From Camelus dromedarius (Eukaryota), in the NCBI RefSeq assembly GCF_036321535.1, contig NC_087446.1:56110001-56174000 (forward strand): a DNA stretch of 64,000 nt, given 5' to 3'. A program made the translations under genes and the position numbers. Below are positions 30,799-64,000 of this stretch, piece after piece (position 1 is the first letter of the stretch; each line of letters starts with the position of its first letter). The notes beneath the pieces were generated by a model. That model saw only the letters and a list, made by a program, of their open reading frames with translations, ran no database searches and was not told the origin of the DNA.

Positions 30799-45930
<15,132 letters not shown>

Positions 45931-46329
45931 GGCAGCTGCAGTGTGGGAGGCTGAATTCCCTGGGGTCTGCAGTGGGCGGGGGACTTCTTCAGCCACAGCC
46001 CCCGCCCATGCCCACTGCCCTGGCCTGGGAGGCTCCGTGCCCGCCCTGCCTGGCCTGCTCACTGGGTCTCCAAGAGTCCTAAGGAGAAAGAGAGGAAAAG
46101 GAGGGATCAGAGAACGATCACGCTGAGGTTCCAAGCCCCATTGCCCTCTCCCAGGTGCAGTCTTTTTCCTCTTTGCTGCTGGGGTCTGGACTGCCCAGGC
46201 TCAGGCCTGTAGGGGAGGCAGGACAGATGCTTATGCAGGCTCAGAGAAACTTTCCCCGAAGGGTAAATTGAGTTTCTAAGGTGAATGATAGTCTTCAGAC
46301 TCCTGGCAGATAGGACTCCTAAGCTGAGA

Positions 46330-56780: not shown

Positions 56781-57481
56781 TCCAATAATAATTGTCAGGC
56801 TGGTTGTCAGTCTTGCGGAGACAGCCAGACACCCCCACCCCCACACCTGGGACTTGTCCTGTCCGGAAACTCCCAGAACCTCGGCCTCCTCCCTCTGCTG
56901 TCAGCTCCCACCAACATCACAGGCTCAGTCTCAGAGTATCTGTTGCTGCTGCCGCTGCCGCCACCACCCTCTGTCTCCTCTGGGGACTGTTTGGGAGCCT
57001 GAAGCAGCTGTTCTGGCCATCAGGGCTGGTGAGTGATGGGCAGGGGTCCTTACCCAGGCAGGTGTCAGGTGCCTGGAGCTCAAGAAATACTTTTTGATTG
57101 AATAAAGGGGAAGGCTTCAGAGTTGATCAGACCTCACCAGGTAGAGAAAAGAGAAAGGGCGCTCAGAGCAGAAGGAATGGTGTAAACAAAGGACTAGAGG
57201 TACAAAAGTGCACATCATATTGGGAGAACATGTTCTGGTCTGCTGCCCTTGGAGGGTTTTCAGTGGAGGGGAGGGGGTCAGGAGAGCACTGCCAGGCAGG
57301 CCTGAGAGGGAGGTCTAGATGGGAGGGTGGGGGGTGGATCTGAGCTCCTACAGGATCAGCAAGGCTCAGCAGTGTCTTAAGTTTAATCCTGTCCCCACCC
57401 CTGCTCCCCACAGTCTGCCCCTTTGACTCCACCCCTGCCTCCCCTTCACCCAATCCCCAGCCTGGCTGTTCCTGCAGCTGA

Positions 57482-57994
57482 ATGGACTTCTCTCTGGGCC
57501 TACGACTGGGGCCTCGGAACAAGAAGGCCAGCCACCAACAGCCCCTTCCACCCTCTGGGCACGGTCCACCAGCTGCCTCTCCTTGTCTGTCCTGTCCACC
57601 CTCCACCTGTGCCTGCCCCTGCCCTGGCTGCCCCCCTCCCACCTGCTCCTGCACAGCCCACCCATCTCATGCAGCTACCTGTCCCTCTTGTCCCGGCCTC
57701 CTTGGCCCACCGTGTACCTGCTCCTGCCCTCCCTGCCCTGCTTGTCCTCCCTTGACTTGTCCCCACAGTTCCTGCATCCCATGCTGTGGTCCCCACTTGA
57801 CCTGCTGCCACCCCTCTCCTTGCCCCATGTACGTGTGCTCTAAGGGTCGAGCCCCCTGTTCCAGCTCCTGCTTGGGCTGCAGTGACAGCTATGGCTGTGT
57901 CCGAGGTGCTGCCTGGGGACCTCTAGGCTCCACTGGCCGCTGCAGCTGCTGCTTCAGGGGACAGCGCACCTCTCGGCACTGTCTGATAGTCTAG
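57482..57994 (+). CDS. Uncharacterised Cys/Pro-rich protein, 170 aa, with C-terminal CaaX (CLIV)
   Basis: Intact ATG-TAG ORF with 31 Cys and 32 Pro; Cys codons concentrated in this frame (overlapping listed + ORFs have 1 and 3 Cys); acceptor ttcctgcag| 4 nt before the ATG. Confidence 0.65.
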   Translation: MDFSLGLRLGPRNKKASHQQPLPPSGHGPPAASPCLSCPPSTCACPCPGCPPPTCSCTAHPSHAATCPSCPGLLGPPCTCSCPPCPACPPLTCPHSSCIPCCGPHLTCCHPSPCPMYVCSKGRAPCSSSCLGCSDSYGCVRGAAWGPLGSTGRCSCCFRGQRTSRHCLIV

Positions 57995-59749
57995 CTTGGC
58001 TGTTGCCCCACTGAGAGATTAGAAGTCTCCCAGATCTCTCCTGCAGCTGCTTCCTCAGCGGGGAGGCAGATGCTCTGGGGGGTGGATCAGCTGGACCCTT
58101 CACCCAGGCCGGTGAGACAGCGGCTGGCCACCCAGAGCCCCGGTCTCTTCCTCAGTCCTGAGAGAGAGAGTGGACCACCTGCTTTGAAGTTAGTTTCTGG
58201 GCATGCTCCCGTTGGTTCCAGAACCTCCTCTTCTGCAACTTCTGGAATAGAAAGTCTTCTTCTCAGAGCCTGCCCCATGGCCCCTGAAGGTGAGCAAGTT
58301 GGCCATTTTCCCCTCTAGTCTGCCTCCCCTGCAGACCCTTCGTGGCTCATCTCTGCAGTGTGCATGGATAAGATGGGTCCTTCCTCTAGAGGTGATAGGA
58401 GATCCTTTGTCCAGGGGCCACTTTTCTTGCCCCATGGACCTCCACCCATCTCCTTGACTGACCTATGAGTCTCTGGACCCCTTACCTCTCATTGTGAGTA
58501 TGGTAAAGAAAGTCAGTGGCTCTTGGACCAAAAGAAGAGGCTGAGCAGAGGATTCCTGGTTAAACCCTCCCTTGGATATCATGACATCTTTCATGGTCCT
58601 TTGCTTCCAGGAACCTGGCACTCTCTACCTGGATGTCTTATCTTTCAAATCTTTCAGTGCTCGCCCAGCCTCATGACCTCAATCTTCCAGCAGTAATCCC
58701 ATCTGTTACATCCATGCTCATCTGGCAGGGGGCTGCCGAAGCAGGGAGCCCTTGACTCAGGCGCCAGTGATCCCATCCATGCATAACTAGTTGCTAGATG
58801 TAAGTCCCCTGTCCCTGAGGGTGGGGCTGGGGGTTTGGAGAAGCCACCAAGAGGAAGCCGGAAGTGATAGGCCTACGTATCTGCCCAGGACTGGACCCTA
58901 AGCTGAGAGGCCCTAAGCACCCCTCCACATTTCCCAAGACTTCTGAGGCTAGCCTGCTTCAATCTTCTCTTTCTCGCTCCTTCTCTGGGACCCTTTGTTC
59001 TTTCCTTTCTGTCTCTGTTTCTCCTTCTGCTTATCCTTCCTTCTAGCTTTTTATACCACTCTCTCCATTTCTATTTCCTTCTTTCTGTCACCTGGACATT
59101 CTGCCTTCACCTCACTTGTGTCTCTGTATCTGTCTTCCCCACTCTATGTCCCTCTCTTTCCCCATCTAATTTAAAATCTATTTAATGTATCTATCTTTTT
59201 CCTTCCCCCTTCCCTGTCTCAGTCCATGACTTTGTGTTTGTTTTCTTCCTCCTCCTATCTCTCTCTTTTCTGTCCTATTCTGCTTCTGGGTGCAAGTCAT
59301 TCTCGAACTCTTCTATTTTTATGTCCCTTTCTGTCTTTGTCTCTCTTCCTGTCTTCTGGGTCTAGCTGTTTTTTCATTACCTATCTCTCTTTCTGCCTCC
59401 CCACTATCTAGCTTTCTCTCTCTCTGTCTCCCTAGGTCCTGCAGCTGCCTGCACACTAGGTCTCCGGTGTGCCCATCTCACTGCTGCCCAAGGGCCAGGA
59501 GGACACCAAGTCCTCCATTGTCTCGCTGTCCCTCACACCCCCATGCCCTGGAGTGAGTGAGGGCTGGACACAGCTACCAGAACAGTCCCTTCTTCCCCTA
59601 CTCACTGTCCTGGCCATCCATTCCTACTCAGCTCTAAGCCCAAACCTTTTCAAAAATGATGTTTTTCTCTCAACTTCTTATTCTGAAAATTGACAACTGA
59701 AGAGAAAAAGAGTTACACACTTACGCTGCCTGTCCTGTATAAACTATAT

Positions 59750-63747: not shown

Positions 63748-64000
63748 ATGCTGGTGACTGCCTACCTTGCCTTTGTGGTCCTCCTGGCCTCCTGCCTGGG
63801 GTTAGAGCTGTCAAGATGCCGGGCTAAGCCCTCTGGAAGGGCCTGCAGCAACCCCTCCTTCCTTCGGTTTCAACTGGACTTCTATCAGGTCTACTTCCTG
63901 GCCCTGGCAGCTGACTGGCTTCAGGCCCCCTACCTCTATAAACTCTATCAGCATTACCACTTCCTGGAGGGACAAATTGCCATTCTCTATGTCTGTGGCC
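63748..64000 (+). CDS. MFSD5: MFSD5 (major facilitator superfamily, putative molybdate transporter), N-terminal 84 codons, runs off the window
   Basis: gccATG; MLVTAYLAFVVLLASCLGLELSRCRAKP...DFYQVYFLALAADWLQAPYLYKLYQHY matches MFSD5. Confidence 0.95.
   Translation, partial: MLVTAYLAFVVLLASCLGLELSRCRAKPSGRACSNPSFLRFQLDFYQVYFLALAADWLQAPYLYKLYQHYHFLEGQIAILYVCG

Follow-up and report, generated by a model that had tools for sequence, protein, structure and literature searches.

The open reading frame (ORF) at positions 57482–57994 (+ strand) of the dromedary window, by which we mean the whole 64,000-nucleotide stretch of DNA analysed here, is the camelid orthologue of an uncharacterised single-copy gene with annotated orthologues only in placental mammals. 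Codon-level comparison strongly supports a protein-coding gene under purifying selection in the ORF frame. Taken as a whole, we read its product, with moderate confidence, as a disordered, geranylgeranylated, Cys-rich, membrane-associated protein of placental mammals that is likely to be expressed in the eye.

The ORF and its genomic setting

57482..57994, + strand: complete coding sequence (CDS), a single exon of 170 codons plus TAG, running from ATG to TAG.

A first-pass annotation of this DNA had described an intact 170-residue ORF with 31 Cys and 32 Pro, and our recount returned the same figures, which together make up 37% of the product. The motifs it had listed were all found in the translation, with CxxC occurring eight times, CxC six times and CC three times, the basic patch RLGPRNKK at residues 8–15, CSCC at residues 154–157 and CLIV at the C-terminus. 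Cys codons pile up in the ORF frame across this stretch (31, vs 3 and 7 in the other two frames), and the overlapping + strand ORFs hold 1 and 3 Cys, again as counted earlier. Long ORFs are present in all three + frames and on the minus strand here, and an ATG-initiated ORF of at least 170 codons arose in 1.65% of 2000 dinucleotide shuffles; length alone is therefore only mildly unusual, because the region is A-poor. At least 31 Cys within the longest ORF were reached in 0 of the 2000 shuffles.

The RARG A1 exon (MATNKERLF...) occupies approximately 45.6–46.1 kb of the minus strand, upstream of the ORF. On the other side, the MFSD5 CDS begins at 63748, the start of the pangolin MFS_5 gene aligning to 63748–64000 with 93% identity. 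These positions put the ORF between RARG and MFSD5, the location originally claimed for it. In pangolin, the orthologue and MFSD5 share a strand, with the orthologue approximately 5.7 kb upstream, and the window ORF is placed likewise. Elsewhere in the window, both alternative RARG N-terminal exons are readable on the minus strand, at 38724–39713 (gamma-2 type) and 45628–46134 (gamma-1 type), and a CpG-rich region at approximately 50.2–50.7 kb is N-masked in part.

Orthologues in placental mammals

In a word-indexed search of 5.8 billion proteins, full-length orthologues, 62–99% identical, made up 28 clusters that cover all four placental superorders (Afrotheria, Xenarthra, Laurasiatheria and Euarchontoglires). 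Their sources include camel, pig, donkey, beaked whale, meerkat, bats, pangolin, mole, manatee, tenrec and anteater, together with lemurs, a colobine monkey and many rodents; extra members in three of the listed clusters come from ruminants, gorilla, orangutan, macaques, marmoset, squirrel and owl monkeys and slow loris. Intact copies are thus found in apes, Old and New World monkeys, loris and lemurs, contrary to the earlier suggestion that the gene was possibly lost in primates. Across 29 aligned sequences, the start and end are shared and length differences consist of in-frame indels only; for 12 of the CDSs this comparison extended to the DNA level.

One database protein, P0056, recorded in NCBI and UniRef, is identical to the product of the window ORF, which is therefore an already deposited protein and neither unannotated nor without a named gene, as had been proposed. 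Orthologues are named 'uncharacterized LOC122455340 homolog', and in mouse 'Predicted gene 9918' (Gm9918, UniProt Q8BUR5, BAC38644.1, the last an accession of a type that we take to be cDNA-derived); some species carry the automatic NCBI names 'keratin-associated protein 9-8', 'SMCP' or 'SPRR 2H-like'. NCBI orthologue names usually follow the human gene, and LOC122455340 is therefore probably its human counterpart. Comparison of the mouse Gm9918 and 'LOC122455340 homolog' models with the window ORF gave a full-length match that shares both its start and its C-x-I-[V/I] end; they are the window gene in other species, with no structural difference and no described function. A study of eye genes records one human orthologue for Gm9918 (PMC6951830).

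The gene is accordingly already known, with RefSeq, Ensembl and UniProt entries in dozens of mammals, including this genome. In the literature searched, no papers were found for LOC122455340, Q8BUR5, EG432988 or BAC38644, and Gm9918 appeared only as an entry in two published gene lists; the protein itself is without description there and constitutes an orphan family. The sequence-only call of 'coding' was thus correct, in contrast to those of 'unannotated' and 'lost in primates'.

Purifying selection in the ORF frame

To measure selection on the reading frame, we built a 12-species codon alignment from orthologous DNA of nine chromosome-level genomes and three Logan contigs. The CDS forms one contiguous block in all nine chromosome-level genomes. 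Median NG86 dN/dS across the 12 species was 0.33 in frame, compared to 1.24 and 1.09 after shifting the reading by one and two bases. Maximum-likelihood estimation (GY94+F3X4) gave an omega of 0.43, and fixing omega at 1 cost 44.5 log-likelihood units (likelihood-ratio test, 2dlnL = 88.9, p = 4e-21). Invariant columns amounted to 38% within the ORF vs 5.6% outside it, distributed as 77, 75 and 40 over codon positions 1, 2 and 3, so that third positions vary most. The frame-specific dN/dS, the likelihood-ratio test and the codon-position pattern together indicate translated-type sequence under moderate purifying selection, in agreement with the coding selection that had been proposed from the Cys codons; an omega of 0.33–0.43 is moderate constraint only.

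The ORF is also the conservation peak of a 5.5-kb alignment of 10 species, with 0.72–0.88 identity to the camelid sequence, compared to about 0.5–0.75 over most of the flanks. Two lineage-specific insertions of several hundred bases, in Mesoplodon (contig L002) and Saccopteryx (contig L010), fall upstream of the ORF relative to window positions 57083–57260; they are SINE-like with poly-A or poly-T tails, and leave the ORF and the conserved block upstream of it (described below) uninterrupted.

Transcript structure

57475..57477, + strand: CAG that follows a run of pyrimidines and resembles a splice acceptor, 5 nt upstream of the ATG; candidate only.
58287..58296, + strand: donor-like AAG/GTGAGCA (boundary 58289/58290), 295 nt after the stop, present in 10 species.

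The CAG before the ATG is kept in nine of 12 species, reading TAG in Saccopteryx and AAG in Manis and being lost in Tamandua. A two-exon layout with a donor near 57030 is unsupported at that donor, since the camelid GT is not conserved: CTG/GTGAGT (window 57020–57040) is camelid-specific, with GGAGAG or a variant in eight of nine others and a gap in manatee. At the donor-like site downstream of the stop, none of the 10 species departs from AAGGT or AGCA; intron position +3 is G in nine of them and A in Rattus. This site ends a conserved non-coding block (58182–58296) in which indels are not multiples of three. It could possibly belong to a 3'UTR intron of the ORF gene, or to an upstream alternative exon of MFSD5 or another transcript; the stop codon would look premature if the donor were used in the same mRNA.

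No AATAAA occurs on the + strand between 57995 and 60502, approximately 2.5 kb after the stop. Three Logan contigs (L001, L011 and L012) were considered as transcript evidence and rejected; they are colinear with genomic DNA over 1–3 kb and therefore uninformative on splicing. Several species have three to four RefSeq protein accessions of identical sequence, which fits alternative UTR exons.

Anatomy of the protein

57482..57529, + strand: residues 1–16, MDFSLGLRLGPRNKKA, the best-conserved segment and not a signal peptide; mean column identity 0.95 (29 sequences).
57584..57841, + strand: Cys/Pro-rich core, residues 35–120, in which 23 of the 31 Cys form CxC, CxxC and CP(x)CP patterns.
57941..57952, + strand: CSCC, residues 154–157, candidate palmitoyl second membrane signal, 10–13 residues before the CaaX Cys.
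57980..57991, + strand: CLIV, residues 167–170, CaaX box with predicted geranylgeranylation site C167; a C-[L/Q/M]-I-[V/I] end is common to all 29 aligned sequences.

Seven residues of the N-terminal segment (M1, D2, F3, S4, G6, L7 and G10) are invariant in the 29 sequences, and the Kyte-Doolittle hydropathy of residues 1–19 is −0.87. Cys is the best-kept residue class of the protein, with a mean column identity of 0.87 and 17 of 31 positions at 90% or above; residues 17–33 and 121–155 are the loosest segments. The conserved stretch C-A-C-P-C-P-G-C occurs in the protein, as do two related C-x-C-x-C-P-x-C-P modules spaced 35 residues apart. Internal duplication is weak, consisting of direct repeats 105 and 75 nt apart in the Cys/Pro-rich core. 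No tandem array was detected in the ORF, TRF returning only two to five copies of short, low-scoring units, and an Rfam scan of 55–61 kb gave no match; a repeat origin of the ORF was rejected, the internal similarity being weak and a tandem array absent.

By a simple hydropathy test the protein has no hydrophobic segment, the highest 19-residue Kyte-Doolittle window reaching 0.71. AlphaFold2, run with the 29-sequence alignment, returned a pLDDT of 40 and no secondary structure, with values of 34–39 in the core. Cys makes up 18% of the chain, which also contains 2 F, 2 Y, 1 W and 8 H. The orthologue of the mole Talpa occidentalis (P0027), at 164 residues, lacks part of the CPPPTC segment and is the most diverged laurasiatherian orthologue (p-distance 0.347 vs 0.24–0.30); this divergence, seen at the protein level only, hints weakly at relaxed constraint in a species that lives underground.

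A conserved C-terminal CaaX box

The terminal CaaX box noted in the first-pass annotation turned out to be the most strictly kept feature of the protein. The C-terminus reads C-[L/Q/M]-I-[V/I] in 29 of 29 sequences, with C167 and I169 invariant, and the stop falls directly after X, three codons past the Cys, in every sequence, despite in-frame indels a few residues upstream. Residue X is V in 19 sequences and I in 10, and a2 is Ile in all; at a1, mouse, rat and tenrec have Q, and guinea pig and gundi have M.

Such an end fits the consensus of geranylgeranyltransferase I (GGTase-I), Cxa[L/F/I/M/V], which comes from a yeast screen in which CAIV gave a strong prenylation gel shift, and an Ile or Val at a2 is suited to Rce1 cleavage (PMC11304957). 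Valine or isoleucine at X is a secondary rather than an optimal GGTase-I choice. The features expected of a GGTase-I substrate are present, namely a Cys four residues from the end, an aliphatic a2 and an X within L/F/I/M/V, and the C-terminus appears cytosol-exposed as judged by hydropathy alone (maximum window 0.71, N-terminus −0.87). Upstream of the box, C157 and S164 are invariant and R159 is present in at least 90% of orthologues. From these motifs, the protein may be prenylated at C167, palmitoylated at CSCC and capable of binding metal.

Known GGTase-I substrates, such as Rho/Rap GTPases and G-gamma subunits, resemble the protein in having a Cys at −4, a branched aliphatic a2 and an X within the accepted set, as well as in being cytosolic with upstream Cys and basic residues, features that are predicted from sequence here. 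Unlike these substrates, the protein has no folded domain, and is instead a disordered Cys/Pro-rich chain. CNP, which ends in CTII, is an example of a GGTase-I CaaX substrate that is processed by RCE1 and ICMT.

Relationship to known Cys-rich families

None of the 29 orthologues matched any Pfam-A model at E ≤ 1, and the KRTAP, LCE and metallothionein models therefore all miss the protein; the models without a match at this threshold include Keratin_B2, Keratin_B2_2, Keratin_matx, PMG, LCE and NICE-1. A profile search of the PDB gave no match either. When 1.84 billion cluster representatives were searched exhaustively with an HMMER profile, only two clusters were retrieved, both of them the protein's own orthologues, so that this search found no paralogues, no tie to KRTAP, LCE, SPRR, SMCP or metallothionein, and no annotated non-placental relative. 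On these profile comparisons, the protein is an orphan family, seen only in placentals. Together with the lack of a tandem array, they speak against the kinship with KRTAP, LCE, SPRR and SMCP proteins that had been suggested.

A language-model search did retrieve KRTAP, LCE and CRCT1 clusters as look-alikes, with scores of 0.72–0.82 that the tool rates as leads only; at scores below 0.9, the resemblance is compositional only. High-sulfur KRTAP, SMCP, LCE, SPRR and CRCT1 proteins are, like this one, small, cytosolic, of low complexity and rich in Cys, Pro, Ser and Gly. Unlike them, the protein has no detectable homology to these families and no tandem repeats, combines a conserved CaaX end with a unique conserved N-terminal 16-mer, and is encoded by a single-copy gene, a singleton between RARG and MFSD5 that lies outside the KRTAP and epidermal-differentiation clusters. 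Its expression lead is also the eye, in contrast to the skin, hair and testis of KRTAP-type proteins.

Metallothioneins contain approximately 30% Cys and are devoid of aromatic and His residues; MT3 has a CPCP motif, which the stretch C-A-C-P-C-P-G-C resembles. Dense CxC, CxxC and CC motifs are a further likeness; however, the protein has only 18% Cys, is rich in Pro, contains F, Y, W and H, and matches no metallothionein model. The plant HIPPs (heavy-metal-associated isoprenylated proteins) provide a precedent for metal-binding proteins with a CaaX prenylation box. This box is shared; unlike the HIPPs, the protein has no HMA domain, and metal binding is here suggested by Cys spacing alone.

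Expression lead and conserved non-coding elements

57335..57391, + strand: conserved upstream block of approximately 55 nt, candidate proximal promoter element, seen in alignments of 10–12 placentals.

One study assigned mouse Gm9918 to an eye co-expression module as a 'high-confidence' gene, beside crystallin and photoreceptor genes (PMC6951830). This module is the sole published lead on expression, and no support was found for the testis or skin expression that had been envisaged. Upstream of the ORF, the block at 57335–57391 ends in an invariant TAATCC (57384–57389), 93–98 nt before the ATG, also contains TCAGCA-like half sites, and is the most conserved non-coding element near the ORF. We take this TAATCC to be the core of CRX/OTX-type homeodomain sites, and the block is suggestive of a photoreceptor-type (CRX/OTX plus MAF-like) proximal promoter. 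Approximately 700 nt downstream, a second conserved block (58650–58720) carries an invariant TGACCT(C) half site (58674–58680), a TAATCC (58694–58699) in six of 10 species and a CATCTG E-box (58700–58705), making it a candidate enhancer.

Because of the one mouse co-expression study and the invariant upstream TAATCC, the eye (retina or lens) is the likely site of expression. The module listing, the TAATCC elements and the divergence in Talpa, taken together, are suggestive only of eye expression.

Alternative readings

We weighed three other explanations of these data. The ORF might be a chance one in C/T-rich, A-poor regulatory or lncRNA sequence between two divergent promoters, as could be supposed from the long ORFs in all three + frames and on the minus strand, from the approximately 1.65% of shuffles that attain 170 codons, from flanks that are fairly conserved too (0.55–0.75) over approximately 4 kb, and from the conserved donor-like site after the stop, which suggests an NMD-prone or non-coding transcript layout. 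We consider this very improbable, given that dN/dS is 0.33 in frame and above 1 in the other frames (p = 4e-21), that variation is concentrated at third codon positions, that the ORF is intact with a shared start and end in 29 sequences as well as in further primate and ruminant cluster members, and that no shuffle reached 31 Cys. If the ORF is coding, its product could still be a structural protein of hair, skin or sperm that is crosslinked by disulfides, like KRTAP, SMCP, LCE or SPRR proteins, and in which CLIV has no lipid role. The similar composition, the language-model look-alikes and the automatic NCBI names all point this way; against it stand the Pfam and profile searches, the absence of a tandem peptide repeat array, the singleton locus outside the KRTAP and epidermal-differentiation clusters and the eye as sole expression lead, and it leaves unexplained why the Cys at −4 never varies and why the stop always follows three codons later. 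We regard it as improbable.

The invariant C-terminus could also be accommodated by a cytosolic Cys-rich protein that is not lipidated, its end acting as a PDZ or other docking motif or as a degron and its core as a soluble metal or redox buffer. Ends in -L-I-V or -L-I-I do resemble class II PDZ ligands, and basic and Ser residues precede them (R159 and S164). A class II ligand, however, needs a hydrophobic residue at −2, where mouse, rat and tenrec have Q, and guinea pig and gundi M, substitutions that the permissive a1 position of a CaaX box would tolerate; moreover, a PDZ ligand has no need of a Cys at −4, the one absolutely invariant feature. Because these two features go unexplained, a class II PDZ ligand is the weaker reading of the C-terminus, and we judge the non-lipidated protein unlikely without being negligible. 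A geranylgeranylated, membrane-associated protein thus remains our preferred reading.

Proposed mechanism and significance

According to our preferred reading, the intrinsically disordered Cys/Pro-rich chain would be synthesised in the cytosol, since it has no signal peptide or hydrophobic segment. GGTase-I would add a geranylgeranyl group to C167, after which RCE1 would cut off -LIV and ICMT would methylate the new end. The lipidated chain would then be held on the cytoplasmic face of a membrane, with the CSCC cluster and the basic residues R159 and R162 providing a putative second membrane signal. Its approximately 30 thiols might form a membrane-bound metal-thiolate (Zn/Cu) scaffold or a redox or acylation scaffold, and would not be part of a secreted or cornified disulfide-crosslinked matrix; as far as motif spacing only can suggest, they could serve in metal-thiolate binding, redox buffering or multiple acylation.

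A more far-reaching version, which we think distinctly unlikely, is that a gene born in the placental ancestor, with no recognisable relatives, encodes a geranylgeranylated, possibly multiply palmitoylated, metallothionein-like chain on photoreceptor or lens membranes, under a CRX/OTX-type promoter. If true, the protein would be an animal counterpart of the plant prenylated metal-binding proteins, and a possible new cargo of PDE6-delta-type lipid-binding chaperones or a retinal disease candidate.

If the lipid anchor and eye expression are both true, the visual system would have a prenylated membrane protein that is so far uncharacterised, and the gene would be worth considering as a candidate at 12q13 for retinal or lens disease loci still unsolved, as well as a clean case of a lineage-specific gene under selection.
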